A DNA stretch of 64,000 bases, taken from positions 72,788,001 to 72,852,000 of the forward strand of contig NC_086103.1 in the NCBI RefSeq assembly GCF_963921235.1. Reading direction: 5' to 3'. The notes beneath the pieces were generated by a model. It worked only from the letters and a program-made list of their open reading frames with translations. It did no database searches and was not told the DNA's origin. This DNA comes from Mobula hypostoma (taxonomy: Eukaryota). Within the stretch, counting starts at the first letter, position 1. The number at the start of each line of letters is the position of its first letter. Position numbers and translations under genes: made by a program. Positions 643-41,034 of the stretch are shown one piece after another.

Positions 643-990
643 GTCGAGTCGCCTTCGTCTCTGGGACAAACGTGCGAGGAGTCACGGGACAGTCGATCAC
701 ACTGCCGTGCCACTATTCTGTCGGAAAATATGTAAAAAGAGCGATGTGCTGGGGTCGGGGACAGTGCCCTTTAAGCGGCTGCGGACACGTGTTGATTGGA
801 ACAAATGGACACAGAGTAACTTCTGTAACATCCCAGAAATACAGTCTTGGTGGTAGAATTGCGGCAGGAGATGTGTCGCTCACCATAAATGATCTACAGA
901 GAGAAGATAGCGGCTGGTATTGTTGCCGTGTGCGGATGCCGGGACTGTTTAATGATCTGATAACGAATTTGAATCTCCGGGTTTTGGACG
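643..990 (+). CDS. TIM/HAVCR-family IgV domain exon, copy V1 (phase 1-1, 348 nt); its leader exon lies just upstream of the window
   Basis: Acceptor ttctttcag at 634-642 and donor GTAAGC at 991. Open frame GRVAFVSGTNVRGVTGQSITLPCHYS...MCWGRGQCPLSGC...GDVSLTI...DSGWYCCRVRMPGLFND...LRVLD. The six cysteines, CWGxGxC, YCCRV and the FG-loop xFND motif are TIM hallmarks. Bases 1-130 align to intron 1 of copy V2 from about 18351. Confidence 0.93.
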
Positions 991-1025
991 GTAAGCAGCT
1001 CAATATTACATGACTCTGTGTCAGA

Positions 1026-1330
1026 AATGGCGGCATAGCGGTGTAGATGCTAGTATATTTTGCACACATCTCCTGTGATTCTGGTTCGATCCCGAGCTCT
1101 TCTGCTTATTGTGCGGAAATCATATGTCCTTCCTTGCTTCCTCCAGTGCTCTGAGATCGCAAGAACAGGTTAGTAGATTAATCGGTCAGCGTAATCTACC
1201 TCTAATGTAAATTAACAGCAGGACAATGGCGGGGAGCTAAGTTTCCAAGGAAATATGGGGGATGTATCTGATGGGAATCTTGGGCAGCTGATATGGTCGC
1301 GATGGGCTGAACGGCCCTCCTCTGCCCCCG
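1026..1330 (+). mobile_element. Decayed tRNA-derived SINE in the intron after V1; the same insertion follows V2 (about 19142) and V3 (about 35680)
   Basis: A-box-like ggcggcatagcggtg and B-box-like ggttcgatcc, at the same position after all three V exons. Confidence 0.6.
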
Positions 1331-1779
1331 AGAACATAAGAAATAACACAATGAATACTGATTTATTGTTCGCTCTGTTGTATATCCAGTACAATGGATA
1401 ATGTGCAGGATAACAACGGCAGGACAGTACAATGTGATATGGACAAAGAGTGCATTGTCTGAGATTCTCTGGAGAGAATTGTTTTGTGTGTTGCATCAGA
1501 TATACAACACAAAATAATGGGCTTCGTGTGCCAATAACAGTGTTAATGCTGCTGTCGTAGGAGCATAACCAATAGAAACAGGGGTTGTCCACTGGGCATT
1601 TCTGGCTGTTCCACCATTCATTCAGAATGTGGTTGATCTTCTTTCTACCTCAGCACCATTTTCCATCATTGTCCTGTATCCCTTGACTCCATGTCCAGAC
1701 ATCTATCAATCTGTGTTTTGAACAAATATGAAGAATGGGCATCTGTAAACTAAAGGATCACGATCACAGAAAGATCTTC

Positions 1780-4700
1780 TTCTGCTGAGCTTTATAAGAT
1801 ACTAATTAGGCTGCACTGAGAGTATTGGCTACAGTTTTGGGCCCCTTAGCTCAGGAAGGATGTGTTGTCATTGGAGAGATTACAGAGGAGGTTCTCGGGG
1901 ATGATTACGGGATTCAAGGAGTTAACATGTGAGGAGCATTTGGCAGCTTTGGGCCTGTACTCACTGGAATTTAGAAAAATGTGGGAAGATATCATTGAAA
2001 CCTACAGAATGTTAAAGGACTAGATAAGGTGGATGTAGAGCAGATGTTTCCTATGGTGGGAGTATCCAGAACTATAGGGCACAGTCGTACAAGGGGGCGC
2101 TGTGAGCGGACCCCAATGCAAGACATAGACACTGAAGTACAAGGAACAGGACTAGGTTTGTCAAGAAAGCAAGGGAAGTGGGGAAGAAAGGACGCCGGAC
2201 ATGACACAGTCCCTGGACGAGACAAGGATTCAGGGCCTGGGCTAGAACTTGACTAGGAAAGTGGGACCAGGACAAGGAAAGCGGGCCAGAGACTGGACAA
2301 CGACCCTGAACCTGGGTCTTGACTCAGGCTTGGACCCCGGAACTAGGTGAGGATATGATGTGGCTACAGGACTGTACATGTCTTGGATTCTTTGAGACGT
2401 GGCTACAGGATTGGATATGGCTTGGGTTCTTCAAGGCTTGGGTATGGGCGCCAAGCCAGAGACTGGGCTAGGACCCAGAATCTGGGTCTTGACTCGGTCT
2501 CGGACTCCAGGACTAGGCAAAGACATGACTTGGCTAAAGGACTGGATGAGGCTTGGATTCTTTGAGGCTTTCCTGGGCAGGACGATGTAATCCTGGGCTG
2601 GGCAAGAACACAAAGCCCTGACTTGGTCTTGGGAGAACTGGACCACAGGGACTTGGTCTTGGCAGAACTGTAACACAGAACACAGATCCTCGGTAATCTT
2701 GGGAGACTGGAATGCAGAACACAGAGATGGTTCCCAACACCAGGTAGCAGCAAACGGCTGGACCTACCTAGCGAAGGCGTGGACACAGAGATGGTTCCCA
2801 ACACAAGGTAGCGGCAAATGGTTGGACCTACCTAGTGAAGGTGTTGGCATAGAGATGGTTCCCAACACTAGGTAGCGGCAAACTGCCGGACCTACCTAGC
2901 GAAGGCGTGGACACAGAGACAGTTCCAAACAACGAGAGACAGTTCCTTATCTAGACACAGCAAGGCTCCGGTCTTGCTCCAGCAGTAGAACTTGACAGTA
3001 ATACAGGTGCGGACACAGGCGTGTTGCAGGCAAGGCATCAGGAGGAAGGGAAAGGGAAGGGAACAGTCCAGCAAATGAAGCTGAACCCAGAAGCTATTTA
3101 TGTAGCCAGCCCAAAATGAGAATCAGGTGCCTCAATTAGAACACCCAACAGAACAAGGGAAAACCGGAAAACCTGGAATAAGAAATGATGGACCGGACTG
3201 TGAATGGAATGTGGACTTCACAGACTGGACCATGACAGTACTACCCACTCCCCACCACCACCACGGGAGCCTCCTGGCGACCAAACAAGCAATCCCAAAC
3301 TATGGACGACACGGGCGGGTTGAGGGCATTCAACAAGAGAGAACCCAGGATATCGAGAGTTGAAAGACAGTCTCTGTGTCGCTGGGTCCACGTCTGGCTG
3401 GAGTGTTCTGTCATACAAGGGGCGCTGGGAGTGGACCCAAATGCAAGCCACAGACACCGAGGTACAAGGAACAGGACTAGGTTTGTCAAGAAAGCAAGGG
3501 AAGTGGGAAAGAAAGGACGCTGGACATGACACAAGCCCTGGACGAGACAGGGATTCAGGGCCTGGGCTAGGACTTGACTAGGAAAGCGGGACCAGGACAA
3601 GGAACTAGGAACTAGGATCCTGGGCTTGGACTCTGAGCCAGAGACTGGACAAGGACCCAGAACCTGGGTCTTGATTCAGGCTTGGACCCTGGAACTAGGC
3701 AAGGACATGACGTGACTACAGGACTGGACGAGGCTTGGATTCTTCAAGGCTTTCCTGAGCAGGATGAGGTACTCCTGGGCTGGGCGAGAGCACAAAGCCT
3801 TGACTTGGTCTTGGGAGAACTGGAACACAAGGACTTGGTCTTGGCAGAACTGGAACACAGAACACAGAGTCTTGGTAATCTTGGGAGACAGGAACGCAAA
3901 ACACAGAGCCTTGGTCTGGAGAGACAGGAACATGGAACACAGAGCCAGGATCCCTCCTTGGGAACAGGGCATAGGGCCAGGACCCATACACAGAATGCTG
4001 AACACAACAAGATGGTTCCCAACACTAGGTAGCGCCAAACAGCTGGACCTACCTAGCGAAGGCGTGGACACAGAGACAGTTCCCAACACAAGTAGCAGCA
4101 AATGGCCGGACCCATCTAGCGAAGGTGTGGACACAGAGATGGTTCCCAAGACAAGGTAGCAGCAAACGGCAGCACCTACCTAGCAAAGGTGTGGACATAG
4201 GGACAGTTCCAAACAACAATAGACAGTTCCTTATCTAGACACAGCAAGCCTCAGGTCTTGCTCCGGCAGTAGAAATTGACAGTGATACAGGCGAGGTTGC
4301 AGACAAGGCTTCAGGAGGAAGGGGAAGGGAAGGGAACAGTCCAGCAAATGAAGCTGAATCAAGGAGCTATTTATGTAGCCAACCCAAAATGAGAATCATG
4401 TGCCTCAATTAGAGCACACAACAGAACAAGGAAAAACCGGAAGACCTGGAATAAGGAACGATGGACCAGACTGTGAACCAGAATGCGGACTTCACGGACT
4501 GGACCATGACAGGCACGGCCTCAAGACTGAGGGGTGATCCTTTAGAACAGAGGTAAAGAGGATTTTTTTTAAGCCAGAGAGCGGTAAATCTGTGGAATGC
4601 TCTGCCACAGACTGCAGTGGAGGCCAAGTCTGTGTGTATATTTAAGACGGAAATTGATTGTTTCCAGATGGGTCAGGGCACTAAAGGAGACGGCATCCAG

Positions 4701-4790
4701 GCAGGTGTATGGGGTTGAGCGATATCCAGGATTAGCCATGATAGAATGGTGAAGCGGACTCAATGGGCTGAATGGCCTCATTCTGCTCCT
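1780..4790 (+). mobile_element. Old CR1 LINE 3' fragment, split by the LTR element at 2083-4511
   Basis: CR1 ORF2 C-terminal similarity (aggttc...gggcctgtactcactggaatttagaa...gggcac|...tttttaagccagagagcggtaaatctgtggaat) and 3' UTR; the reading resumes after the insertion. Confidence 0.8.
2083..4511 (-). mobile_element. Non-autonomous Gypsy (Tf1/sushi-like) LTR element: two LTRs (2083-3237, 3409-4511) around a 171-bp internal region
   Basis: LTRs with TGTCAT...ATGACA termini (left start mutated to AGTCGT), 5-bp TSD GGCAC (2078-2082, 4512-4516), minus-strand PPT ggtggtggggagtgggtagtac, gag-start-like GTGGACCCAGCG next to the 5' LTR, and ~57-bp tandem repeats inside the LTRs. Confidence 0.85.
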
Positions 4791-4819
4791 ATGTCTTATA
4801 GTCTTATAGTATGTACAGT

Positions 4820-4940
4820 TCTGATGAAAGGTATTGGCCCAAGCCATCAACTGTACTGATTTCTATAGATGCTGCCTGGCCTACGGAGTACCTCCAGCAT
4901 TTTGTGTGTGTTGCTTGGATTTCCAGCATCAGCAGATTTT
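4820..4940 (+). mobile_element. Penelope-like element terminal repeat remnant
   Basis: ctgatgaaagg...gatgctgcctggcc...ccagcattttgtgtgtgttgct, the same motif as the 3' end of the Penelope element at 48300-48400. Confidence 0.6.
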
Positions 4941-5415
4941 CTTTTGTTTCTCATGTAAGTTCTGGCTGGCCTGTCTCAAGTTCTTGGTTCCTCAGGCAGG
5001 GAAAACAGCCTCCTTACATTTTTTTCTGCCAAGTTCTTGAAGGATTTTTAATGTTTTGTTGAAGCAGAAGAAAGTAAAATCCCAGTCTACTCAATATCTC
5101 CTCATTTAGAAAACCTAGCAATCCTGAATCATTATTGCACTCTGCCTATGGCATGTACATCCTTTCTTAGGTAAGAGGCCATAAGTGTCCAATATACTCT
5201 TGGGTGCTTTTGCCAAGTCATTTTACAAGTACAGCAAGACTTGCTCATTGCTGTATTCAAATTCTCTTGTAAATGATCATCGACTATTTGCACCTACATC
5301 AGACCTTGGTCTCTATAAACTTTAACATTATGTAATCACTCTCCATTTAATAACTAATTTACTTTTCTATTAATTGCACCAGAATAGATAAGGTTTAAAT
5401 TTTTTTCACATTGTC

Positions 5416-7440
5416 GGAACATGGAAACATAGAAAACCTACAGCAAAATACAGGCCCTTTATCCCACAAAACTGTGCTGAACATGTCCTTACCTTAGATA
5501 TTACTGAGAGTTACCCATAGTCCTCTATTTTTTAAAGTTCCATATACCTATCCAGGAGTCTCTTAAAAGACCCTATCGTATCTGCCTCCACCACTGTCGC
5601 TGGCAGCCCATTCTCTGCATAAAAAACTTAACCCTGACATCTCCTCTGTGCCAACTTCCAAGCACCTAAAACTGTGCCATCTCGTGCTAGCCATTTCAGC
5701 TCTGGGAGAAAGCCTCTGACTATCCACACAATCAATGCCTCTCATCATCTTATATACCTCTATCAGGTCACCTCTCATCCTTCATCGCTCCAAGGAGAAA
5801 AGGACGAGTTCAATCAACCTATTCTCATAAGGCATGCTCCCCAATCCAGACAACATCCTTATAAATCTCCCCTGCACCTTTTCTATGCTTTCTACATCCT
5901 TCCTGTAGTGAGGCGACCAGAACTGAGCACAGTACTCCAAGTGGGGTCTGACCAGGTTCCTATATAGGTGCAACATTACCTCTCAGCTCCTAAACTCAGT
6001 CCCGCGATTGATGAAAGCCAATACACCGTATGCCTTCTTAACCGCAGAGTCAACCTGCACAGCAGCTTTGAGTGTCCTATGAACTTGGACCCCAAGATCC
6101 TGCTGATCCTCCACACTGCCAACAGTCTTACCCTTAATACTATATTCCGCCATCATATTTGACCTACCAAAATGAACCACTTCACACTTACCTGGGTTGA
6201 ACTCCATTTGCCACTTCTCAGCCCAGTTTTGCATCCTATCAATATCTTGCTGTAAACTCTGACAGCCCTCCACACTATCCACAACACACCCCGACCTTTG
6301 TGTCATCAGCAAATTTACTAACCCATTCCTCCACTTCCTCATCCATGTCATAATAAAAATCACAAAGAGTAGGTGTCCCAGAACAGACCCCTGAGGTACA
6401 CCACTGGTCACTGACCTCCATGCAGAATAAGACCCGTCTGCAACCACCCCTTGCCTTCTGTGGGCAAGCCAGTTCTGGATCCACAAAGCAAGGTCCCCTT
6501 GGATCCCATGCCTCTTTACTTTCTCAATAAGCCTTGCATGGGGTACCTTATCAAGTGCCTTGCTGAAATCCATATAAACTACATCTACTGCTCTACCTTC
6601 ATCAATGTGTTTAGTCACACCCTCAAAAAAATTCAATCAAACTCGTAAGGCACGACCTGCCCTTTGACAAAGCCATACTGACTATTCCTAATCATATTAT
6701 GCCTCTCCAAATGTTCATAAATACTGTCTCTCAGGATCTTCTCCATCAACTTACCAACCACTGGTCTATAACTTCCTGGGCTATCTCTACTCCCTTTCAT
6801 GAATGAAGGAACAACATCCACAACCCTCCAATCCTCCAGAACCTCTCCTGTCCCCATTGATGATGCAAAGATCTCCTCCCCAACCTCCCACAATAGCCTG
6901 GGGTACATCTCATCTGATCCCGGTGACTTATCCAACTTGATGCTTTCCAAAAGCTCCCGCACATCCTTAATTTCTACATGCTCAAGCTTTTCAGTCCGCT
7001 GTAAGTCATCCTTACAATCGCCAAGATCCTTTTCCGTAGTGAATACTGAAGCAAAGTATTTATTAAGTATCTCTGCTATCTCCTCTGGTTCCATACAAAC
7101 TTTTCCACTGTCACACTTGATTGGTCCTATTCTCTCACTTCTTATCCTTCCTGCTAGCATTATAATCTTCTGGACTCTATCATCACCTAGTATTTTGAAC
7201 CTTTCATAAGTTTTTTTTTCCTTCTTGACTAGATTTACAAGAGCCTTTGTACACCATGGTTCCTGTACCCTACCATCCTTTCCCTGTCTCACTGGAACGT
7301 ACTTATGCTGAACACCACACAAATATCCCCTGAACATTTGCCCCACTTTTCTTACATTTCTCTGAGAACATCTGTTCTCAATTTATGCTTCCAAGATCCT
7401 GCCTGATAGCCTCATATTTCCCCTTGCTCCAATTATATTG
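5416..7440 (-). mobile_element. CR1 LINE, 5'-truncated and degenerate ORF2 (RT)
   Basis: Minus-strand ORFs with [41 protein letters not shown]; reverse-complement tail aaacatagaaaa at about 5430. Confidence 0.92.
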
Positions 7441-8389
7441 TATTCCATTTGTCATTTTCTTGCCCTCTCACTGAGCTTGTTTATATAACCTTGTAGCCTC
7501 TTCACATCCTGCTCTGTGCTCCCAAACCCACTTGGTCTTACACTGTTGGAAAATCCAAAACATATAACTTTTTCCCTCATATATTTCATTGCATCTCAGT
7601 CCTGAATGATGATGCCTTATTTTAAGATTCTGACATGATGATCCCTACAGGCAAAGCATTTCTTACACCTGCCCTTTGCAGCCCTCTCAGAATTGTATGC
7701 ATTTCAATCAGCTCTCCTCCTATTCCTCCAAGCTCTGCTGTGCGCTGAACATCTGTTTCCCTGGAATCAATGTATGAATATTTATTTCTTCTGATCAAGT
7801 TTTTTGTTTATCGGCCTATTGGCTTACTTAGCCTTCAGTGACCATGAACACAGACACCCAGATCCTTTGAATGTCCAATCACTCACCGTATAACAAAAAT
7901 CTGTTTTTCTTATATTCCTCCTGAAGTGGATCATGTCACATTTCACCACATTATATCCCATTCATTATGTCCTTATCTATTTAGCCAGACCTCCCTTTTC
8001 CATTGATTTCTCCTTACATTCTCTGTAAATCTCATGGTGTTAAATCTTGGAAATGTTGCCCTTGAGCTAAGTCTTTGATATATGTTACGCAGAGAAGAGG
8101 GTCCAACCCTGTGACTATGAAGCCCATCCACCTGCAGATTCACAACTCAAGCTTATTCCATCTGTTTTCTCCGTTAACCAATGCAGATTAGAGAATTAAC
8201 CCCGAAACAATGTGTCCTAATCACAGCTAACAGTGGCACTTTAAAGAACCTCCAATGGTCTAAATACTTAATATCCACCTGTTGTCCCTAATCTTTTCTA
8301 CAAGTTATATAAGCTTGAAGTAAGTGAATAAAATTCCATGACAAGCATGGAAAAACATAAAAATAATTTTAATGTTTCTTCTGTGACAC

Positions 8390-8470
8390 AGACAAGCACA
8401 CAGTTCTGTTAGCCACAAATAAGTGCTTTATTACACACCATGGAAATGATGTTGCTTACTTACATCTCTA
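8390..8470 (+). pseudogene. Decayed copy of the 84-nt stalk exon in the V1 duplication unit
   Basis: Aligns to 32676-32759 (agcaca...ccatggaaatga...ttactta). The acceptor tacag is changed to gacac, and the ccagg|gtcagt donor segment is deleted. Flanking introns also align to 32500-32940. Confidence 0.65.
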
Positions 8471-9152
8471 ATATCAATGTCTTTTTGTTTAGATAAACTG
8501 CAATGTAGGTGATAAATGTTAATAAGTATGCCTTGAAATCGATTTTAGTTGAAATGTTTATGTTTAGAACCTTAAGATTTGGTGAAGACATTTGCATAAG
8601 GCAGGCTGAGAATGTCTGCAGTAAAGTGAAAGTAAAACTTGCATTTTATAAATTGCCAATCTCTCTGAGCAGACATTGGGAACCTGTTTCCACGGACAGG
8701 GATGTGGTGATGATCAGATGTAGATCATTATTGCAGATTTATTAACTTAATTACCAATTGGTTAGGAATCGAGTTAATTTCTTGTTCATAAAAATAATCA
8801 AAGGTATGACAACACCAAAAGAACTTAATATGACCAAATTAATGGTACTGTGTCTGTTCACAGAATGAGCAACAAGGTAATCAAATCAGTGACACAAGTA
8901 GAAGTAATCCTGATTTCATCACCTTGCGGAAATCTGTCCAAAATGTTCTATGAAGAAACTCAGTGAGATGACAAGAACTTGGCAGATGGAAAACAATGAA
9001 GACATATGGGAGATCATCCAATTTAGTGCCAATCATGTAAAAATAGCTTTTCTTAAATTCTGAGTGATTGTGTGGTGCTGAAATTTATAAACAAGATGTG
9101 ATGATACACACATCTCTTCAGGTCACTGTGCAGGTGGAAATAATAAGTTACC

Positions 9153-12100
9153 AACTGTAAATCATTTAATCGAATCTGGTGTATTGTGTGTTATTTGGGC
9201 GGGGTGGGGTACATCACACAGCATCCACACAAACTGATTACCCAGTTTGGCGGGGCTGAGGGCTGTCTCCCTAGACGACAGCGAACCGAGCGACCCTGAG
9301 GCGGCCAGGGGGCTACATTGTGGGCTTTTGTCCGGGATTGGATCTACTGGTATGCTGTGTGGTTGCCCTGTTTAAATCAGTAATGTGAGTCTCTGTGGGT
9401 TATTTGCTGGTTATCGCTGTATGCGTGGAGGGTGAGGTCTTTGTTCGAGTTCAGACTAGCATTGACGAGTTGGAGGTGCTGTTGGGAGAGAGAGGAAAGT
9501 GTGGTCTGATTTGGAGGTAGTGTCTGTGAATGAATGTTCTAGCTCTGGCAGGCTCCGCCTGGCATTTGAGATAGTGTCCACCCCAAGAGGGGCAGTGGCG
9601 TGCGAGACGTAGGCGAAGCGGATCTCTCAGTTGTTAGATGAGTGGCAGTCCTTGGTTGAGGAAGAGCGACAGGGATTGGCTGAAAGTTTAAGTAGGCGGG
9701 CTGGTGACGGTGTTAGAGCTGTCAGGTTCACTTACACCGTAGTGACAGCTGTCAGTTATTTGAAAGGGGGGGGGAAAGTTTTCAGTGTGTCTTCTCTGGC
9801 TAGGAGGGCAACTAAATTGCTTGCAGTGCCAGGGGGATCACTTCAGGGGATCAGTTGTTCAGCTGATCAGAGAGGTGTCGGGAAACTTAGTGGAGGCCCA
9901 GTGGGGAACGGCTTGGAGTCTCTGGAGAAGCACGTTCCCAGCAATGTACCAATGAACTTCCGAAAGAAAAAGACCCTATTCCGGAAGGCTTAGAGGGACC
10001 ATGCCCCAGGGTGTCGTTATGGATAGAGTGAAGCGATGTTAAAGCCATCCTTGACCCCGGGGCGCAGGTCAAGTTGTTGTACAGTTCATTTTACAACCGG
10101 TGTCTGAAGCATTTACCCTTGACAACCGCAAGGGCACCAGAGATTTTGGGTACCAGTGCCAGTAGTTATCCAGAAGACGATGATTGGTTAATGACCCTGG
10201 AGTTCATGGAGGCATTGTCTGGGCACCCAGCGTGTCGAGTTGCTTCTGAGGACGTGTGTAGCAGCCTTGAGCCAGTAACGAATTTAAATGAGACCCAGCA
10301 GTGGTACGGCCTGGGGAGAGCAGCTGAGGGTGAGACCCTCTTAGTAGACGCTCCGAACTACCACGAGGGAGGGGAGTTGACCGCTGAAGACACCTCAGTG
10401 AGAGAGAGGTCGCGGCAACTGAACCCTGGCGGCATGGAAGATGAAAGCAGCGTGTGTGTGGATTATGTGACATGGTTTCATGTGCTGGATCTGAGGGGTG
10501 GATGTTGCCAGATCCCGAGGAGTGCAGCTGTTGAGCCAAAGACAGCCGTTATTAGTTCCCTAGGATTCTTCCGATCCGAAAAGATGCCCAAGGGCATATC
10601 TGGAGCCCCTGCATCCTTCCCGCGGGGCATGAGGATGACCATGGGGGAAGTGAAGGTGTGTGGAGTTTTGGCGTATGTGGATGACCGCCTAGAGCTTGGA
10701 TTTGCCTGGGGGGACTATGAGGCGAGCTAAGTGGCTGAGCCCAGGCGACCGAAGTGAAGTGTCAAATGTAGAGGAGTTTTTGGCCGGAGGAGTTTGTGCA
10801 ATGTGAGAAAAATGACCCGACATACCAGTTGAACTTCCTGGTGTTGGAACCGACGGTGGTGGACCTGGGAATGGAAACCCAGGTCGTCAATCTGAATGAG
10901 ACTCAGGGGAGAGAGAAGATTCACACCGCTGGACTGAGTGCTCTGAAATGCCAGCCGGAGACTGAGTGCCGCACTTGTGGGACGACCAATGCAGACTTGG
11001 AATTCACGCTCGTCAACATGGAGAAGGAGCAATGGAATTCCGAGCCGACACTGTGGTCATGTACTGATGAATTAATCCAGGGAGAAGAAACAATGACCCA
11101 CCTTTGAAGGGATCAGCAGAAACTCAAGAAGTTGATTCAGAAAAGACTGGAAGACTTACAGGTTGGGGAAGATCAAGGAAGTGTTCTGATTAAAGCCAAC
11201 AGAAAACCGAAAGCCCGGGGAGGGGATTTTGACTACACTCCCGAGGAGGTGAAGAAATGGAGGACAGATTTCGGAAAAGGGAGGCGGATGCATGAAAGGA
11301 ACCTGAAGATGACCATCGACAGTTTAAATGCTGGAAAGACTCAGAGTTGACTTGGAAGGCGTCATCAGGATGGAAAAACAGGAGGCTGAAGGGGTAGCCT
11401 CGGCTAAATGTTTCAGTTTGGAGAAACTCAAACAGCAGCTACCAATCGAGGGAATGAGGAAGAATACGGATTCGAAGGATGATGTGCTGGACATGTGGTA
11501 CACGCTGCCTTTCGCTAACTTCCCCGTCATTGAGGAAGAGACCTTTGGCCCTTCTCAGTTGTAGTAGGGAGGGCTAGCTGTGGGCAGTCTGAGTTACGGC
11601 AGGATCAGGAAGGAAAAGAAGCGGGGCCCCAGATACGGAACAGGGGGCTCCGAGTTGTAATGGTGGCCTGAGTGAAAGAGTACTCAGCAAGCAGGCCTGA
11701 GGTATCCCTAGAAGTGTCTGAGCCTTTAGGGTTTAGGTGAGGGGGTACCGAGGTCTCGGAGGATTAGGGAGCTCTCAGACAGGTTGGCCTATGTAGCGCC
11801 CGTGGACGGGCGGAAGGTCCATTGTTTGGGAAGCAATGTCACTGTGTGTAGCTGGATGGGTTTCTGTGTCTGTAGGACTGGTTGCCGAGTTATTTAGAAG
11901 TCATGAGGACATGACTTTATTTGGTGGGGGGAGAGTGTAAGGGGTTTCTTTTTTTATGTCACTGCGTAGTCTAATTGAAAGGGCTTCTTTGTTATGTTAA
12001 CTGCTGAGAAAGTCCTTCCCGTGCATGAGTGGGCCAGTGAAGGAGTGGAGCTTTGAGGCTATGACTCGAGAGGCTTCGACGAGAAGAGGCGGAGGACAAG

Positions 12101-15100
12101 CTAGCTCGCAGTTAGTTTTTACAATGTCTCCTGAGACGGTGATGTGCCTCTCATGTAAGATGTGGCAGTCTTGGGGGAACTCCCCTCTCCCACAGAGTCA
12201 CATCTGCCAGAAGTGCATACGGCTGGGCAATCTGGAAGACCGTGTAAGGAATCTGGAGCAGCACCTGAATGACCTTCGACTCATAAGGGAGAATGAGGCA
12301 GTCATAGATGAGAGCTACAGGGAGGTAGTCACACCTAGGCTGTCAGAAGCAGGCCGTTGGGTGACAGTCAGAGGGGGGAAAGCGAAGGTGAGCAGACAGG
12401 TAGTGCAGAGCACCCCTGTAGCCATTCCCCTGAATAATAATTTTACCATCCTGTATACTGTTGGCAGGGACGACTGACCAGGTGTGAGCCACGGTGGCAG
12501 GGCCTCCAGCACTGAGTCTGACCCTGTGGTGCAGAAGGGTGGGACGGAGAAGAGGAGAGCTGTCATTATTGAAGACTCTATAGTCAGGGGAGCAGACAGG
12601 AGATTTTGTGGACGTGAGAAGGACACCCGCATGGTTTGTTGCCTCCCTGGTGCCAGGGTCCGGGATGTCTCTGACTGGGTGCACGACATCCTGGTATGAG
12701 AGGGAAAGCAACCAGAAGTTGTGATACATGTTGGGACCAACGACATAGGCAGAAAGAGGGATGAGGTCCAGAAGTGTGAGTTTCGGGAACTAGGCAGAAG
12801 GCTGAAGAACAAGACCTCAAGGGTGGCGTTCTCAGGATTGCTGCCAGTGCTACGTGACAGTGATGGTAAGAATTGGAGGAGATGGCAGTTGAATGCGTGG
12901 CTGAGGAGTTGGTGCAGGGAGCAGGGTTTTAGATTTTTAGATCATTGGGATCTCTTCTGGGGAAGGTGGGACCTGTACAGATTGGATGGGTTGCACCTGA
13001 ACTCGAGGGGGAGCAATATCCTTGCAGGTAGGTTTGCTAGCATGGTTCGGGAGGGTTTAAACTAATTTGCAAGGGGGATGGGACCCAGAGCGATAGAGCA
13101 GTGAAAGAAGTGCATGGAGTAAAGCCAGATCTAACATATAGAGAGGCTTTGAGGAAAGAGAAGCAGAATAAATGGTGTAAAGACAGTAAGGTAGAAGGGC
13201 TGAAATGTGTGTACCTCAATGCAAGAAACATCAGGAACAAAGGTGATGAACTGAGAGCTTGGATAAATACATGGAATTATGATGTAGTTAGTGGCCATTA
13301 CAGAGACTTGGCTGGCACCAGGGCAGGAATAGATTCTCAATATTCCTGGATTTCAGTGCTTTAAAAGGGATAGAGAGGGCAGAAAAAGTGGAGGAGGGGT
13401 GACATTACTGGTCAGGGATACTATTACAGCTACAGAAAGCGGGGGTAATGTAGCAGGATCCTCTTTTTAGTCAATATGGGTGGAAGTCAGGAACAGGAAG
13501 GGAGCAGTTACTCTACTAGGGGAATTCTATAGGACCCCTGGTAGCAGCAGAGATACAGAGGAGCAGATTGGAAGGCAGATTTTGGAAAGGTGCAAAAATA
13601 ACAGGGTTGTTATCATAGGTGACTTTAACTTCCCTAATATTGATTGGCACCTGATTAGTTCCAAAGGTTTAAGTGTGTCCAGGACGGATTCCTGTCACAG
13701 TATGTGGACAGGCCAACCAGGGGGAATGCCATACTAGATCTAGTACTAGGTAATGTACCGGGTCAGATCACAGATCTCTCAGTGGGTGAGCATCTGGGGG
13801 ACAGTGACCACCGCTCCCTGGCCTTTAGCATTATCATAGAAAAGGATAGAATCAGAGATGACAGGAAAATTTTTAATGGGGGAAGGGCAAATTATGAGGC
13901 TATAAGGCTAGAACTTGCGGGTGTGAATTGGGATGATATTTTTGCAGGGAAATGTACTATGGACATGTGGTCGATGTTTAGAGATCTCTTGCAGGATGTT
14001 AGGGATAAATTTGTCCTGGTGAGGAAGATAAAGAATGATAGGGTGAAGGAACCATGGGTGACAAGTGAGGTGGAAAATCTAGTCAGGTGGAAGAAGGCAG
14101 CGTGCATGAGGTTTAGGAAGCAAGGATCAGATGGGTCTATTGAGGAATATAGGGAAGCAAGAAAGGAGCTTAAGAAGGGGCTGAGAAGAGCAAGAAGGGG
14201 ACATGAGAAGGCCTTGGCGAGTAGGGTAAAGGAAAACCCCAAGGCATTCTTCAATTATGTGCAGAAAAAAAGGATGACAGGAGTGAAGGTAGGACCGATT
14301 AGAGATAAAGGTGGGAAGATGTGCCAGGAGGCTATGGAAGTGAGCGAGGTCCTCAATGAATACTTTTCTTCGGTATTCACCAATGAGAGGGAACTTGATG
14401 ATGGTGAGGACAATATGAGTGATGTTGATGTTCTGGAGCATGTTGATATTAATGGAGAGGAGGTGTTGGAGTTGTTAAAATACATTAGGACAGATAAGTC
14501 CCCGGGCATGACGGAATATTCCCCAGGCTGCTCCACGAGACGAGGGAAGAGATTGCTGAGCCTCTGGCTTGGATCTTTATGTCCTCGTTGTCCACGGGAA
14601 TGGTACCGGAGGATTGGAGGGAGGCGAATGTTGTCCCCTTGTTCAAAAAAGGTAGTAGGGATAGTCCGGGTAATTATAGACCAGTGAGCCTTACATCTGC
14701 TGGAAAGCTGTTGGAAAAGATTCTTAGAGATAGGATCTATAGGCATTTAGAGAATCATGGTCTGATCAGGGACAGTCAGCGTGGCTTTGTGAAGGGCAGA
14801 TCATGTCTAACAAGCCTGATAGAGTTCTTTGAGGAAGTGACCAGGCATATAGATGAGGGTAGTGCAGTGGATGTGATCTATATGGATTTTCGTAAGGCAT
14901 TTGACAAGGTTCCACACGGTAGGCTTATTCAGATAGTTAGAAGGCGTGGGATCCAGGGAAGTTTGGCCAGGTGGATTCAGAATTGGCTTGCCTGCAGAAG
15001 GCAGAGGGTGGTGGTGGAGGGAGTACATTCAGATTGGCGGATTGTGACTAGTGGTGTCCCACAAGGATCTGTTCTGGGACCTCTACTTTTCCTGATTTTT

Positions 15101-26690: not shown

Positions 26691-26699
26691 GTAAGAATA

Positions 26700-29457: not shown

Positions 29458-29658
29458 NNNNNNNNNNNNNNNNNNNNNNNNNNNNNNNNNNNNNNNNNNN
29501 NNNNNNNNNNNNNNNNNNNNNNNNNNNNNNNNNNNNNNNNNNNNNNNNNNNNNNNNNNNNNNNNNNNNNNNNNNNNNNNNNNNNNNNNNNNNNNNNNNNN
29601 NNNNNNNNNNNNNNNNNNNNNNNNNNNNNNNNNNNNNNNNNNNNNNNNNNNNNNNNNN
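29458..29658. other. Assembly gap (about 200 N, true size unknown)
   Basis: Run of N; the left flank is a CR1 fragment. Confidence 0.99.
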
Positions 29659-30989
29659 TCAGCACAAGTTTACTCCCAGTACAAATTGCTTTAACAGATC
29701 CAATAATAACTGTTTCTATATTGGGAATTTTAAAGGTTGCCTTGCATTTATTGTGGACTGCAGATAGGCAGGTATACTAGAGATTCTGAAACAAGCACTA
29801 TATGACTGTAGTTGAGAGATTTTAAACACAAACTAAATTGTTGACATTTGCCTGCCTAAGTTCGTTAAATTTTCTGTCACATTTTAATTATCAGGTATTT
29901 CATTTGCAATGACATGTTGATTCCAGTAATGTTTCCAATGACTTGAGTGGTGCAAATGCTTTTGTCATTGATCCTGATTTTAAACTTACTCAGAGTGACA
30001 GAGTTCCACGTCATGTAACAAACCAGCAAGAATGTTCTTTGTGATTGCCTGTGGCTTTTCAAATAATACTCCTCATTGTCCCATTTGTTGTTTATAGAAG
30101 TGAGAAACAATACACTGGCAATGGGTAAGAGAAATCCAGTGCAGAAGATCCACACCCTGTTGTAAATTGTCCAAGAGAATTGTAGCAGAAAGCGAGTCTG
30201 TAGGGAGAAAATGGTTTATTAATCTCACACGTTTAGCAAAAGTTGGAATAGATGCATGTTCAACATAGGATGTGCATTCCCTAACTGACCATCCAAGGAT
30301 ATTCAGCATTAGTGTAAAAGAAACAGAAAATATTGTCTCAATCACAAGTTTTAGGCTAAAATCCATTTTTTAGGTTATTGAGACCATTTGGTCTTTATCA
30401 GATTGTGTGACCAACTCCAGACATTGTAACAATTTAATCAAAAATCACCCAAAGTAGCTTTTTCTACAGCTGTGCAAAACCTGGAGACAATAAATCAGTC
30501 ATCTTAAAGAAAATGAGAAGTATCTTAGCTTTGAAATGGAGAAAGTGTTGGAAAAGGTACAGAATCAGTAATCACTGGGACAAGTGTGGATTGTTTAGAA
30601 ACATCCGGTGTGTCTTTGTTAAAGACTAATGGTGTCTAATTAATGTGACACAGTTTTTCAAGAGGTCGAATTATCACTGAGCATTTCATAATGTGCTACA
30701 TTTGCAAGTACGAGTAGCTTAGGTGCTCATCTTGGTTGGCATGAATGACATGGGCCTATTTCCATGCTTTATTACTCTACACTCAATTATAGGATTTTCA
30801 GCATGGTTAATATAATATAAAAGATAGTAAATAAGAAATAAAAACTGTAAATTACAGTAAGTATATATAAAACATTTAATTAAGTAGCGCAAACGGTGAG
30901 GGAAAGAATAGATCATATTTTCAAAATATACAGATGGTGTAAAACTTGGCTGCATTGAGAATCATGAAGTAGACAATAATGGACATCAG

Positions 30990-31745
30990 GAACTGGATGG
31001 AGGAATGGGCGATAGATGCTCAGAAGTGTGACGTGTTATATTTTGTGAGGAAAAGCAGATATAAACCAGATGGTTCTTATGAAAGTGAGAATAGTATGGA
31101 AATTTGTAACAAGCAACAAGAGACTTTCCACTGAAGATGGAATTTAATGCAGACAAGTGTGAGGTTTTGCACTTTGGCAGGACCAATCTTACACAGTGAC
31201 TGGTGGAGCAATGAGGATTGTGGTAGAACAAAAGGGATCTGCAAATACAGGTCCGTAATTCATTGTAAGTGCTGTCATGGGTAGATAGGGCCATAAAGAA
31301 AGCTTTTGCACATTGGCCTCCAAAAATCAATGTTATGTTGAAATTGCATAAGATGTCAGTGAGGCCTAATTTTGAGTATTGTGTGCAGTTTTGGTCACTT
31401 GCCTATAGGAAATATATAAACAAGATTGAAAGAGTGCAGAGAAAATTTTCAAAGATGTTGCTATACCTGGAGGACCTGAGTTATAAGGAAAGATTGAACA
31501 GGTTAGGACTTTATTTCCTAGAATATAGAAGATCAAGAGGAGATTGGATAGAGGTATACAGGATTCTGAGAGGTATAGATAGGGTTAATTCAAGCAGGCT
31601 TTTTCACCTGAGGTTGGTTGGGACATGGGTTAAGTGTGAAAGGTGAAAATTCTAAGGAGAACATGAGGGGAAACATCTTCACCCAGATGGCCGTGAGAGT
31701 GTGGAATGAGATGATAGTACAAGTTGTGTATGCAAGCTCAATTTC
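30990..31745 (+). mobile_element. Old CR1 3' fragments
   Basis: RPNFEYCVQFWS, ERLNRLGLY similarity. Confidence 0.75.
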
Positions 31746-31759
31746 AACATTTAAGGGAT

Positions 31760-32150
31760 CTTAGATGTTCCAGGTCAGGGGAATAAGAGTCCGACAAGAC
31801 CATTGTGTCCAAGCACCACAAAGAGTTTATTATGAAACACAGGCCCCCATCTATTGCCTTCTCTGAATCAGTAGTCCAGTCCATCCTGTGTATTGAGAAG
31901 TCATTGGGTCTCACAGATTTATCCAGTATGTCTGAAGTAAGCCTTGTCTCCATGAAACAGAGAATGTGACAATTCCTCATTTCCCTCTGATACAGTAATC
32001 TTACCCTTAGGTCCTCAATCTTGTTCTCCATCGACTGTACATTTGCTAACAATATACTGTGTAGAGTAAATTTCATGCCCTGATTTTTCACTCTAGCTTA
32101 GAGTCTTCCCCTCCTCCCTCTCTTCCAACCATGGCGATCTACCTTTGTCT
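31760..32150 (-). mobile_element. Rex1/L2-type LINE endonuclease fragment
   Basis: LLANVQSMENKIEDLRVRLLYQREMRNC..CFMET. Confidence 0.65.
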
Positions 32151-32675
32151 GCTTAAGGATGCCATACCTGTTTGCTTGAGAGTTAAGTCCGCTGAGTCCT
32201 TCAGAAGATTGTGAAACGACTCAGTCTTCTAGATGGTTCAACATGATGTTAAAGGGAAATTACAGTCTACGGACTGCAGTGAGAGTCATTCAGAAGAAGT
32301 ATATTTTGAAGTTTTGTAAGCCACCCGTAGCACATTGCCATTTTTCACTCATCCTCGCCAATAGAGTGTAAATAACTGGGTCCTCCGTAGAAATGCAATT
32401 GACCCAGCACTTACTGACTCCCAATTCAAAGACAATCTGTTTACTTCACTGTTTTATTTCTGTAACAAGAGCATTCCTGTGCATCAGCGCAAATTCAATG
32501 TTTTTTTTTTGCCTAATTGTGGGAATGAGAAAGGCACTTTGAACCTGCATATCCATCACACTTACTGGTTCTCCAGATCTAACCCAGCCCTCATTCAGTT
32601 CTACGTGAGTCATTGATTGAGAAAAATGAATGAGTTCACTGACATGAAAGTAAATTAACTTTTCTTCTGTTACAG

Positions 32676-32759
32676 GAACCAGCACAACATCTGCTTCACC
32701 CACAATTGAGTCCTTGTCTACAGACCATGGAAATGACATTGTTCCATTTACTTACCAGG
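32676..32759 (+). CDS. TIM mucin/stalk exon S1 (84 nt, phase 1-1): GTSTTSASPTIESLSTDHGNDIVPFTYQ
   Basis: Acceptor ttttcttctgttacag, donor G|GTCAGT, Ser/Thr/Pro-rich open frame that continues V in phase. Confidence 0.75.
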
Positions 32760-33899
32760 GTCAGTCTGCATCTTCCAGGCATTACAATTTATCTTCTAAA
32801 CAATGATATTAATGCTTCTTTATTTGTGTAAACTGCACAATTTAACTATCAATCTTCAAAGTGGACAAGGAGGCCTCGAAATTGCTTTCAATTTAAATGT
32901 TCATGTGTAGAACATTAACAATTATGGTGACTTTAACTTAGATAAAGTATTCTCTGGCCAGGTCTCTGTCGATCCCATGGTCCTTAATCTTCTAGATCAG
33001 CCTACTCTGAAGTACCTTGTCATTCGCTTTACTAAAATTGAAGTCAACAGCATCCACTCTCATTAATTAACCTAACACCTCCTCAAAAACCACATATAGG
33101 TAAAACATTTCCTTCCCTTTCTAGAGAAGGGGCTAGACTTGACATCTTCTTAGGAAATGAGGTGGGCAAGTGGTTGATTTGTTCAGTGGTGGGGGAGCAC
33201 TTTGTGATCAGTGACCATAATTATATTAGCTTTTGATATGATTCAATATAATGTCGTAAACTGGGGTCAGGCTTATTCTGATAGCATCAGACAGGAATTC
33301 TTAAAAGTTGATTGGTAGAGGCTGCTTGCAGGTAAGGGGACATCTGGCAAGTGGGAGGAACTTAACTGTGCGACAGGAAGACTTCAGCACCAGCATGTTC
33401 CTGTTACGGTGATGTGCAAGGCTGGTGAAATTAGAGAACCCGGTGATAATGGATATGGAAGATCTGGTCCAAAAAAAAGAAGGAGGCAAGTGATAGGTAT
33501 AGGCAGCTTACTTCAAGCAATTATAATATTGGATGTAGGAGAACACTGGGGAATGAAATTAGAAGGGGGCTACAAGATACCTCTGGCTGATAAAATAGAG
33601 GAGATTATCAAAGATTCCACAAGTATACTAAGAATGAAAAAGCAACTGGAGGAAGAATCATCCTTTCATGGATCACTGTGGTAATCTAAATTCTGAGTCA
33701 TGGTAAATGGGCGAGGTCTTCATTAGAATTGGTATCGGTTTATTTGTTGTCACATGTGTTTTTACAGTGAAATGCTTATTTTGCATACCGATCATACAGA
33801 TCATATAATTAGGTAATGTCGGGTCACATTCAAGACCCTGAAGGAATACATACAGTGTTTTCTGTCAGTATTTATTGTGGAGAATGACATGGAAAGCTA

Positions 33900-35200: not shown

Positions 35201-35424
35201 ATCAAGTCTATTATGGAAAGGCCGGGACTGAAGAAAGCTGATTGCCACCACCTGTCTGAGGACAAATTTGAGAAGTGGGGGAGGTGTAAGCAGCTAACAT
35301 CCCAGTGAATAGTTAGAAATTTTCTATAGCATTCCTCAGATCCTGCCCTGCTAGTAATTCGATCTGTTTCTCAGTGTAGGGACAAGATTTCAGACTGTGG
35401 TTGTGCTCCCTCTTCCTGTGCCAG

Positions 35425-35643
35425 ACAGTGTTATCTGTAACACTGGACTGTTACTGGTTAGAACGAATGGGGACAGAGTAACATCCCAAGGCTATTATCT
35501 TGGTGGTAGAATTGGGGAAGGAGATGTATCACACACTACAAGTGATCTACAGAGAGGAGTTAGTGGCTGGTATTGCTGCCGTGTGGAGATTCTTGGACTG
35601 TTTAATGATCGGAAAATGAACTTGAATCTTCTGGTTTTGGACA
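35425..35643 (+). pseudogene. TIM IgV remnant V3: 5' third deleted, GC donor, remainder open and in frame
   Basis: RTNGDRVTSQ...LGGRIGEGDVS...SGWYCCRVEILGLFND...LVLD, donor A|GCAAG. The B-strand Cys and C-strand Trp are missing. The downstream intron is homologous to those after V1 and V2. Confidence 0.8.
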
Positions 35644-36199
35644 GCAAGCAGTTCAATATTCCATGTTTCTGTCTCATCAATGGTGGTGCAACAGTGTAGC
35701 AGTTTCTGTAACTGTCCCACAGATCCTGTGACCCAGGTTCAACCCTGAGCTCCGATGTTCCATATGAGAAGGTCACCTCGGTTCCCCAGGTGCTTGAGTT
35801 TCCTTCATTTACATGGGGAACATTTGTTTGGAGAGATTATATTGCTTTGATTGAATGAATAGTGCTCTTCTGCCTGCTGAAAACATATGAAGTAACATAA
35901 GGAATACTGATTCTGTCTTTGTTGTTAATTGCTGTACATGTAGTATGGATAATGCGCTGGGTAAAAGTGGCAGGATGCTACAATATAAAATGTACAATGT
36001 AATAGTGATCCCTGTAGTACCCATGAGTTACCATGATAATGTCAACGGCTCGTTAATAACAGAATGCATTTTCACTAGGACTTGACTCTAATCCTCACCT
36101 TGGAACATTCTCATTACTTATTTCAATCTCTCCTGGGGAAAAGCACTGAACTCAGAGGTAAAGGATGTAACAGACTCCTTGACTTACTGGTAATATCTG

Positions 36200-37812: not shown

Positions 37813-37871
37813 ATCTTACAACCTCTCCGTTTACATCTCCCAGAGATTCCAGTTCAACTCCACATTTACCT
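37813..37871 (+). CDS. TIM juxtamembrane stalk exon S2 (59 nt, phase 1-0): DLTTSPFTSPRDSSSTPHLP
   Basis: Acceptor cattcttacaactgtcattacag, strong donor GTGAGT, S/T/P-rich; supplies the phase 1-to-0 switch needed to reach the TM exon. Confidence 0.75.
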
Positions 37872-38399
37872 GTGAGTAAATACCTTTTTATCCAGAAGAT
37901 AAGTGTTATTAATCATAAAATTTCACTGAGAGGACAAGGTTATCTTTTTCTGCATTGCTTGTTCCAGAGTTGTATTGTACATGCATACTTTGACAATAAA
38001 ATAATCTTTGGAATGCCAGATCTTTAACATACACATAGACATCTGTTAGTCTCGTGAGACCATGGATTTGTGCCTTGGAAGGTTTCCAGGGCGCATGCCT
38101 AAGCAAGGTTGTATGGAAGACGGACAGTTGCCCATGCTGCGTCTCCCCTCTCCACGCCACCGATGTTGTCCAAGGGAAGGGCACTAGGACCCATACAGCT
38201 TGGCACCGGTGTCATCGCAGAGCAATGTGTGGTTAAGTGCCTTGCTCAAGGACACAACACGTTGCTTCAGCTGAGGCTCAAACTAGTGACCTTCAGATCA
38301 CTAGACCCACGTCTTAACCACTTGGCCACGAACCAACACCTTTCATAGAAAAAGTTAAATAATTGAAGAGATTGTTCTGAAGTGAAAGCAGAACTCTGT

Positions 38400-39100
38400 T
38401 TGGGTCATGGTGAAGGGAGGGGAGACCATAAGACCATAACAAGAGGAGGAGGACAGGAGCAGAATTAGAATTTGGCCCCTTAAGTCTGCAGCCTCTTGCA
38501 CCCTTACTAATCAAGAATATATTAACCTCCACTTTAAATGTATATATTTATATATATATTTAATATATACCATCTCTGACAATGAATTCCACAGATTCAC
38601 CACCCTACAGCTAAAAATATTCCCACTAATCTCTATTCTAAAGGGATGTCCTTTTTATTCTGATGTTGTCCCCTTCTTGTCCAAAACTCTTTCACTACTG
38701 GAAACATCCTCTCCATTTCCACTCTATTCAGACCCTTCCGATATTCAGTGGGTTTTAATGAGATCTCAACTTATTCTTCTAAACTTGCAGCAATTACAGA
38801 CCCAGAGCCATCAAACGTTCCTCATACATCAAGCCTTGCATTCCCAGGTCATTCTCATAAACCTCCTCTGGACTCTCTCTAATGTCGACACGTATTTCCT
38901 TAGATATGAGGCCCAAAAGTGCCCAAAAGATTCCAAATATGTTGACAAACACCTTATCAAGCCTCAGCATTACATCCTTGCTTTATATTCCAGTTCACTC
39001 GAAATAATTGCTAACATTATATTTCTTTCCTCATCACTAACTCAAACTGAAAGCTAAAATCTATGGAATCCTACATTAGGACTCTCATGTCTCTTTGCAC
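38400..39100 (-). mobile_element. Old CR1 3' fragment
   Basis: Reverse-complement CR1 3' UTR and ORF2 end (cacagattcaccacc, agatctcaacttattcttctaaac). Confidence 0.65.
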
Positions 39101-40925
39101 CCAACACTTCCAGTCAAGATGATGCCAGCAAACAGTGGCTTCTCAAGCAACATCTTGCAGGTAGCCAATCTCTTCAATTATTTAACTTGTTCTACAAAGA
39201 AGTAGAACTTTCAAAGTTCTGGCATTCCAAAGGTTATTTTATTGTCAAAGTAGACATGTACAATACAACTCTGATATTCGTCTTCTCCAGATAGCCACAA
39301 AATACAGAAAAACCATAGGTGTTGTTAAAAGAAAAGACATCAAACCCTCTCAACCCTTTGTTTCTGTCTTGATTGTTTTGGAGACTGTTAGAGCCTGTGA
39401 TGGGCTGTTTGGAGCTCGATCAGGTTATCTGGCATGTTGCAATCCTCAAATAGTACCCTGAGCACAGGTTACCTCATGCAGGAGACCAGAGAGGGGCCAT
39501 AATCAACTCCATTTTGAAGCATTGAGGGAGATTGAAGTATCATAGTGAATGTGGAGGAGGTCAGTGGTTGCTCTCCATGGAGGCCATGGATTGACAGTGG
39601 TTGGTAGCCAGCTCAGCAGCATTCGGAAGGCCTCAGATCAGCAGTGCAGTGGTCAGAAGGCCACAGGTCAGTGGCGCGGTGGTCACTCTACATGGAGGGA
39701 CTGAGTTCAAGCAGTCGCTCTCACGGTTCTGGTGGGAGGATATGCTCGAAATTCTGAGATGTATGGGATTATTAGTCAGTAATTTATTTTGCAGTCCTTC
39801 AGGTTTTTATGTTTTCTTGCTTCTTGCTAATTGGCCGGTTAGGGTTCTGGGTGGACAATGTGTTGGTTTTTGTATGAGGGAGGGGTTGGGGATTTGGTAT
39901 CTGATGTTCTTGATGTTTTTTCTGTGTTGGCGATCTCCTTTTTTGTGTGTTTGACGGGGTTAGAGGTTTGGTGCTGTTGTTGCTGTTTGTTTTTGCGGGG
40001 GAGGGGTTTGGCGGTGTGATGTTATTGTTACTGGTTTCTACATTGCATGGCTATCTGGAAAAGACCAATATCGGAGTTGTATTACATGAATACTCTGACA
40101 ATAAAATGAACCTTTGGAATGCCAGTAGTCACAGGCAGCCAACTGGAAAAGAGCCCTTTATGCCCATGCATTAGTATGCGTAATCAGTGAGTTTGCACCA
40201 GGGCTCAGTGCATGAAGGTGAGGTGAATCTGTTGAATTGAAGTGTTGAGGACTGAGCAATGGAGATACTTCATTTGTGTGTCAGGGTTTATTGTACAATC
40301 AATAATGCTGATAGCCACATGGATGGATATACCAGTATAAGATTTAACTTGGGAAATAATTCATCTTTCTCACAGTTTTTACATCCTTGGAACATTCTCC
40401 ATGATATTGACCTGCACAACTGACATTTCCCACTATTTCCTGAACATTCATCCAGCAGATCTGCTCTTCTGTAGATAATTTATGTCGGTCATCTCTAAAG
40501 TGCTTCTGATGGGTTCCATTACATTTCAGAACATATTACTGCTCCAGCTGTCTCACGTTCTCTTATTTGTCAACATTTTACAGCAGAAGTAGAAAATGAA
40601 GATCAGTTCTTCCAGCCCTACCATGGTGAACAGTTCACTATTGCCTTCTCCTAATGGCTCATTTCCATCTCTTTTTACAACCCTGTGTGACCACAGCCAA
40701 GCTGAGGAGGATCCTAGCCAGGATAAATCCATACAAAGCTGCCGGGTGCTGAGGGATTCTGTGCCCCAGCTAACAGACATCTTAATGGATATCTTTAATA
40801 TCTCTTTACAACAGTCCATGCTGTGCATGCAGACTTTAAGGAAGCCATGTCGGCATTATACAGTGCTCGCAATCCGCTCATTTTAAATTTAAAGCTGAGA
40901 AAATAGGTCTTGTTCTCTGTTTCAG

Positions 40926-41034
40926 GTTCCTGGTGAGCGTGTAAACAACCTGATTTTTCTGCTTTGCTGGACCGCTCGTGTCTCAGTTTTCGTCTCTTTT
41001 CTTTCCGTCACTGTGCTGCTTTGCAAGTGGAAAC
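40926..41034 (+). CDS. TIM transmembrane exon (109 nt, phase 0-1): VPGERVNNLIFLLCWTARVSVFVSFLSVTVLLCKWK
   Basis: Acceptor tcttgttctctgtttcag, perfect donor C|GTAAGT, 25-aa hydrophobic stretch followed by basic KWK. Confidence 0.8.

Follow-up and report, generated by a model that had tools for sequence, protein, structure and literature searches.

Does the TIM locus of the ray Mobula hypostoma splice several ligand-binding heads onto one set of constant exons? The question is raised by a stretch of 64,000 nucleotides of contig NC_086103.1 (positions 72,788,001 to 72,852,000, forward strand; hereafter the window), which holds two intact immunoglobulin V-type (IgV) exons, V1 and V2, and one intact series of stalk, stalk and transmembrane (TM) exons. 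The original prediction took V1 and V2 for variable cassettes that are spliced alternatively, or in tandem, onto one shared constant region, by analogy with the clustered protocadherin and UGT1 loci. Our analysis points, on balance, to a different arrangement: the window probably contains one ordinary six-exon TIM-family gene and, upstream of it, a partial 5' duplicate that carries a spare V exon. The coordinates of the features are collected in Table 1.

The gene was examined by joining its exons and comparing the product to the public model. The six spliced exons (leader, V2, two stalk exons, TM exon and last coding exon) matched XP_062908825.1 residue for residue over all 242 residues. This Mobula hypostoma model of 242 aa is named "TIMD4-like" and has a single isoform, with no isoform label in its name. 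Its annotated coding sequence (CDS) spans 25,979 nt in GCA_963921235.1, equivalent to 18212-44190 of the window. The gene built from V2 and the constant series is already in the public annotation. Its 5' untranslated region extends back at least to ~18089, and the DNA upstream of the leader exon matches the N-terminal extension of a Mobula birostris model, XP_072120703.1. Both stalk exons and the TM exon have good splice sites, and the exon phases (1,1,1,0,1) are as originally given, to which the last coding exon had to be added. The stalk of the product has 48 residues, including 20 Ser/Thr and 6 Pro, and is followed by a hydrophobic stretch and a 27-residue tail. The product is predicted to be a type I receptor, and the arginine in its TM segment together with its tyrosine-free tail suggests signalling via an adaptor. 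A tblastn search of the whole window with six ray TIM proteins, representing both tail types, detected no second TM or tail exon. The single stalk-stalk-TM series of the original prediction was therefore upheld by this search, which also found no TM exon of V1 that might have been missed.

V1 and V2 were likewise found where they had been placed, with their splice sites intact. Each is 348 nt long and of phase 1/1, with an open frame, the six TIM cysteines, an AG acceptor after a pyrimidine tract and a GTAAG donor. The two are identical at 89.4% of nucleotides and 84% of residues. V1 matches the V-set with E = 3e-17, and V2 is likewise a V-set domain. The best solved-structure matches of the V exons were mouse TIM-1 (2or8; E = 8e-32) and TIM-4 (1e-31), with TIM-3 and TIM-2 ranking behind and pIgR far weaker (4e-13). 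The V exons are ~50-55% identical to the IgV domains of TIM-1 and TIM-4. The FG-loop Asn-Asp, which forms part of the metal-ion-dependent ligand-binding site in TIM-1, TIM-3 and TIM-4, is kept as GLFND in V1 and GLYND in V2, aligned to WFND of TIM-1/TIM-4. With a six-cysteine IgV, the FG-loop Asn-Asp and a mucin-like stalk followed by a TM segment and tail, V1 and V2 are assigned by sequence to the TIM family. Assignment to pIgR or CD300 was considered and rejected on the E values given above. TIM-1 and TIM-4 are phosphatidylserine receptors (PMC7098104). The annotated IgV keeps the residues that bind phosphatidylserine through a metal ion in these two proteins, and the same function is predicted for it.

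Only one of the two exons could be traced to a known protein. V2, queried against 1.8 billion protein representatives, led to annotated ray proteins, and a further protein search led to three Mobula hypostoma proteins. V1 was found in no database protein, among proteins of 63-432 aa; it is 91% identical to the V of a paralog, XP_062908826.1. There is one leader exon within the window, that of the annotated gene, and a V1 leader would fall just upstream of base 1. A tRNA scan made no call for a tRNA-like stretch just downstream of the V exons.

The origin of V1 was traced by self-comparison of the window. The DNA from base 1 (and beyond the window edge) to 17036 is a copy of 18340-25828, with an intronic mismatch between the units of 14.1% and 0.020 gap events per nt. 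Without insertions the duplicated unit is ~8.8 kb long, and comprises the leader with ~1.1 kb of DNA before it, the V exon, an old long interspersed nuclear element (LINE), a degenerate copy of stalk exon 1 and ~1.5 kb beyond it. Three blocks confined to the V1 unit interrupt the homology, namely a minisatellite block (2084-4512), LINE material (~9100-16680) and, inside the latter, a young LINE (12018-15848). Accordingly, the ~17 kb between V1 and the leader of V2 (991-18211) consists of LINE reverse-transcriptase open reading frames (ORFs), minisatellite and duplicated intron with no TM exon, much as it had been described. The copies of the stalk exon inside the two units are indeed broken: they are ~75% identical to stalk exon 1, carry stops in both units and a 1-nt deletion in one (the V1-unit copy), and have lost the donor. 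Because the two copies have common defects, the stalk exon was dead before the unit was duplicated. V1 therefore came from a partial tandem duplication of the 5' part of the gene and at no time had a set of constant exons to itself. That such exons of V1 had been overlooked was considered and rejected on the tblastn result.

A third V copy, psiV3, was overlooked in the original prediction. This dead relic lies between stalk exons 1 and 2; what remains is the 3' portion of intron 1 together with 60% of the V exon, counted from its 3' end. One deletion has removed the acceptor and the first ~46 codons, another 9 nt are absent, and the donor GT has changed to GC. Unselected V copies at this TIM locus do decay, as psiV3 demonstrates. 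Lying between the stalk exons, it shows that the constant series, too, was pieced together by partial duplications and deletions at earlier times. The sequence shows that ~8.8 kb of the 5' part of the gene, containing promoter-proximal DNA, leader, V exon and dead stalk copy, was duplicated in tandem, and that the upstream copy, carrying V1, afterwards gained the minisatellite and LINEs. The dead stalk copies and psiV3 show that repeated partial duplications and deletions built the locus, the birth-and-death mode of evolution also seen in other immune receptor gene clusters.

To describe the constraint on V1, its divergence was compared with that of V2 and of the surrounding intron. The V1-V2 exon identity of 89.4% compares with 88.3% in the downstream flank, so that the exon is no better conserved than the flanking intron; over all intronic blocks the identity is 85.9%, only slightly below that of the exon (Fisher p = 0.08). 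The dN/dS of V1 versus V2 is 0.5-0.7. In a tree of ray V domains, the terminal branch of V1 is ~2x that of V2. With psiV3 as the reference, V1 holds 13 of the 17 polarisable changes (8 non-synonymous and 5 synonymous); at ~6.8% in 191 nt this comes near the rate of intron change per lineage. The outgroup is usable over those 191 nt only and may bias the count, as psiV3 is perhaps nearer the V2 type. From these comparisons V1 appears to evolve about 2-3x faster than V2, near the intron rate. It has also replaced a Lys which all 20 of the other elasmobranch V domains compared have in common. The likeliest status of V1 is that of a spare exon in slow decay, or one used occasionally at best.

Several observations weigh against decay. 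V1 has no stop or indel, and its splice dinucleotides and all six cysteines are intact. Such intactness is mildly improbable under neutral decay (p ~0.007-0.06, the product of 0.10-0.18 and 0.07-0.33 obtained with intronic substitution and indel rates). V1 departs from the consensus at 3 columns conserved at >=85%, which is similar to annotated V domains. The lack of an annotated V1 model argues only weakly against use of V1, as RNA from the relevant tissues may not have been sampled. Furthermore, public models of other rays join two V exons: Mobula birostris XP_072120703.1, and Hypanus sabinus XP_059846115.1 and XP_059846116.1, which are of the form leader-V-V-stalk-TM and differ from each other in the leader exon. 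The evidence for selection on V1 is mixed and weak, and selection, gene conversion from working paralogs and luck are each possible reasons for its preservation.

The same observations bear on the alternative that V1 functions as an additional N-terminal domain. Transcripts from the upstream leader would then encode a V1-V2 tandem of ~358 aa and the downstream promoter a one-V form, so that one gene would make one-headed and two-headed receptors with two types of CC' loop. The V exons agree in phase (1/1) and have strong splice sites that are nearly identical; the V1-to-V2 and V1-to-stalk joins are both in frame. The duplication covered the ~1.1 kb upstream of the leader, and V1 therefore probably inherited a promoter. 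If that promoter fires, the product would be leader-V1-V2-stalk-TM, which carries both IgV domains instead of one or the other: the V2 acceptor is intact and as good as those of V1 and the stalk exon, and a transcript from the V1 leader is therefore expected to include V2. The V1-V2 join would give a junction of …LRVLDG followed by RVAFVSG…, and the M. birostris model XP_072120703.1 has both the A-then-B loop order and a junction peptide identical to this one. TIM-type mRNA with multiple V domains is real in bullfrog, where an RNA contig of 1585 nt has an uninterrupted 464-aa ORF with four V domains. However, the V-V models of the other rays are computed models, the public annotation of M. hypostoma includes no isoform or protein with V1, V1 evolves at the near-neutral rate described above, and V1 is separated from V2 by a second promoter and 17 kb of DNA rich in LINEs. 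We regard a functional V1 as possible but doubtful, and keep to a single-V gene with a spare upstream exon.

The differences between the two V exons are not evenly placed. Of the 37 V1-V2 differences, 16 fall in codons 42-52, which form the CC' loop (766-798 in V1 and 18883-18915 in V2), giving a 'PLSGCGHVLIG' type in V1 and a 'DVMNCGDELIR' type in V2. G/DVMNCGDELIR-like and PLSGCGHVLIG-like loops are found repeatedly in both M. hypostoma and M. birostris, and stingrays have related forms. In the ray V-domain tree, the six 'A-type' domains group as a clade with 99% support, which is lost when the loop columns are left out; the domains then tend to cluster by species. This suggests gene conversion around a retained CC' loop polymorphism. 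A broader reading is that ray TIM loci use small leader-V arrays 5' of one stalk/TM module to make one- and two-headed receptors, the CC' loop types being kept by selection and the rest homogenised by conversion. If so, such arrays would provide germline diversity in the head of a phosphatidylserine receptor by the use of promoters and the inclusion of exons in tandem, and in this window V1 would be expected in transcripts, spliced to V2 or the stalk. We consider this general reading unlikely.

The paralogs of the annotated gene indicate how constant exons are distributed in the cluster. XP_062908826.1 lies on the same chromosome, has the next accession and follows the same exon plan as XP_062908825.1. 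It differs from the annotated gene by six changes in stalk 1, by Ile for Val in the TM segment and by Leu for Gln in the tail. Because these residues differ, the stalk, TM and tail of XP_062908826.1 are encoded by exons that belong to that gene, which argues that no single constant region serves the whole cluster. A further neighbouring paralog, XP_062908823.1, has a different, plain TM segment and a tail that ends EENIYQISE; its EENIY motif is like the tyrosine motif of TIM-3/TIM-1. With near-identical heads, the short-tailed TIM with a TM arginine and the EENIY-tail paralog look like a pair of activating (adaptor-coupled) and classical receptors. Such a TM-arginine TIM beside an EENIY-tail paralog seems undescribed in cartilaginous fish. 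Separately, reading through past the donor of stalk exon 1 (32760-32797) gives …GQSASS…LSS, which resembles the longer stalk (…ASSAGTPEGILSS…) of the classical-tail paralogs. From this resemblance, the two types of TIM gene seem to differ in the end point of stalk exon 1.

The assembly gap in the intron between V2 and stalk exon 1 could in principle conceal coding material, for example one more leader-V cassette or a set of constant exons belonging to V2; the downstream stalk/TM exons would then not be the true partners of V2, and the public model would be a chimera. The gap is of indefinite length, and the V2 unit, with its dead stalk copy, resembles the V1 unit in being of an 'orphan' type. 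However, the left flank is a LINE fragment, and repeats are the usual cause of gaps: the last 76 bases before it (29379-29454) match LINE copies at 42670-42745 and 62631-62689. Sensitive self-alignment of 25400-32700 revealed LINE fragments and the end of the duplicated unit only, with no V-flanking intron or leader near the gap. Exon order and length are as in XP_062908826.1 and M. birostris XP_072120514.1, with nothing absent, and the CDS span of 26.0 kb is close to the 24.1 kb of XP_062908826.1. The simplest history requires no concealed cassette, and we consider a chimeric model very unlikely.

A locus of the protocadherin/UGT1 type, in which its own promoter picks each leader-V cassette and the cassette is spliced alone onto the single stalk/TM set, is highly improbable. 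The single constant set with two intact V exons, the in-frame V1-to-stalk join, the concentration of V1-V2 substitutions in the CC' and FG loops and the leader exons that distinguish the Hypanus isoforms would agree with it. However, the variable exons of protocadherin and UGT1A are first exons, with a donor and no acceptor, of which only the promoter-proximal one joins the constant exons, whereas V1 and V2 are internal exons with a polypyrimidine tract and an AG acceptor, V2 being preceded by a separate leader exon. Their acceptors are as good as that of the stalk exon, and skipping V2 would need special regulation. Moreover, the window has two cassettes only, the annotation joins only the proximal one (leader 2 and V2) to the constant exons, and a paralog has constant exons of its own. 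The analogy with promoter choice thus fails on the internal V exons and their strong acceptors. What stands of the shared-constant interpretation is an orphan V cassette upstream of a complete gene with in-frame joins; the single annotated isoform and the paralog's own constant exons speak against the rest.

The ray gene was compared with known receptor systems. Like the mammalian TIM family (HAVCR1/TIM-1, HAVCR2/TIM-3 and TIMD4/TIM-4), it has a six-Cys IgV with the FG-loop Asn-Asp, lies in a tandem cluster, and has a type I layout with a Ser/Thr/Pro-rich stalk, one TM segment and a tail. The mammalian TIM cluster includes pseudogenes in mouse. In contrast to mammalian TIM proteins, the stalk of the ray gene is very short (its 48 residues are far below TIM-1/TIM-4), the TM segment has an arginine and the short tail is tyrosine-free, and the locus has an orphan upstream V cassette and intronic relics of V and stalk exons. 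The V domains of the two-V ray models, which are named 'pIgR-like' in H. sabinus (XP_059846115.1/XP_059846116.1), are 84-94% identical to V2. Their exon phase and junction peptide equal those of the V1-V2 join, and the Hypanus TM and tail are of the same type; they differ in that the annotated product of M. hypostoma is single-V and that V1 is kept apart from V2 by 17 kb of DNA rich in transposons and by a leader exon. Amphibian models carry 3-5 TIM-type V domains. Protocadherin and UGT1A loci resemble the ray locus in having several variable units upstream of one constant set, with variation on the presumed ligand face. The ray cassette differs from theirs in consisting of a leader exon and an internal V exon with an acceptor, in being present as two cassettes, and in having a paralog with a separate constant set. 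The KIR/LILR, CD300 and teleost NITR/DICP/PIGRL clusters share with the ray locus tandem duplication, exon relics, gene-conversion-like mosaicism and pairs of similar-headed receptors with adaptor-coupled versus tyrosine-motif tails, but the ray head is of the TIM type. A literature search on cartilaginous-fish TIM genes and non-mammalian TIM evolution yielded nothing relevant beyond a general review.

The locus is a clean worked example of an immune receptor gene gaining a spare binding-domain exon through partial tandem duplication, and it corrects the idea of a special shared-constant system, in that the gene is ordinary and already annotated. Alternative or tandem V use at this TIM locus is possible. 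If V1 is present in transcripts, TIM receptors would join the families that vary their ligand-binding head by exon arrays, and an early stage of the route from a single-V TIM to multi-V 'pIgR-like' proteins, as modelled in rays and frogs, would be open to study.

Table 1. Exons, relics, repeats and assembly gap of the Mobula hypostoma TIM locus, in window coordinates.
Feature	Position	Strand	Remarks
V1, intact TIM-type IgV exon of the orphan upstream cassette	643-990	+	CC' loop type 'PLSGCGHVLIG'
Minisatellite-rich block, V1 unit only	2084-4512		self-BLAST; tandem periods of 30, 36-39 and 64 nt
Old LINE fragment common to both units	5418-7346	-	V2-unit copy 20655-22431; 84.5% identical; RVT_1 E = 1.4e-15
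Dead stalk exon 1 copy, V1 unit	8392-8471	+	~75% identical to 32676-32759; stops in all frames
Young LINE insertion, V1 unit only	12018-15848	+	94.3% identical to 57739-61587; RVT_1 E = 5e-33
3' end of duplicated unit 1	17036		unit 2 counterpart at 25828; homology stops at 16899-17036 / 25684-25828
Leader (signal-peptide) exon	18212-18263	+	ATG start, phase 1 end; residues 1-18 of XP_062908825.1
V2, IgV exon of the annotated gene	18760-19107	+	CC' loop type 'DVMNCGDELIR'
Dead stalk exon 1 copy, V2 unit	24317-24397	+	within the intron between V2 and stalk exon 1
Assembly gap, 201 N	29458-29658		in the V2-to-stalk exon 1 intron (13.6 kb); crossed by no reading frame
Stalk exon 1	32676-32759	+	28 codons, Ser/Thr/Pro-rich, phase 1/1
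Dead V relic psiV3	35290-35683	+	between stalk exons 1 and 2; exon remnant 35433-35642
Stalk exon 2	37813-37871	+	phase 1/0
Transmembrane exon	40926-41034	+	phase 0/1; arginine inside the hydrophobic stretch (…LLCWTARVSVFV…)
Last coding exon	44114-44189	+	short tyrosine-free tail and stop codon

Further features were observed around the exons. A local duplication of ~40 nt at 19265-19310 repeats the end of the V2 exon and the start of its intron (…GGGTTTTGGACGGTAGGGAATTC…) ~160 nt past the real donor, and is not present in the V1 unit. In intron 1, an ATG-started open stretch at 18581-18651 (MSFRFPPGSLGIFRNIPPMP…) matches the alternative first exon of H. sabinus XP_059846113/4, isoforms that have no signal peptide; the counterpart in the V1 unit (498-535) hits a stop. 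At both dead stalk copies the pyrimidine tract and AG are retained (8380-8392 and 24305-24317). Splicing of V1 or V2 into these copies would add 10-26 residues followed by a stop, and a soluble V-only product of this kind is pure conjecture.

The repeats gave two more observations. When translated, the minisatellite stretch 3658-4002 is similar to the C-terminal ~110 residues of M. birostris XP_072120702.1, a model with the same leader as the annotated gene, a V domain minus one cysteine and no TM segment. This model seems to run into repeat and may be a decaying orthologue. The young LINE copies at 57739-63358, 12018-15848 and 54761-55866 are 94-96% identical to one another, and long LINE ORFs remain open, encoding an endonuclease (58869-60293) and reverse transcriptases (60313-61593, and 62156-63358 on the minus strand). 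This suggests that the young copies belong to a recently active non-LTR family.

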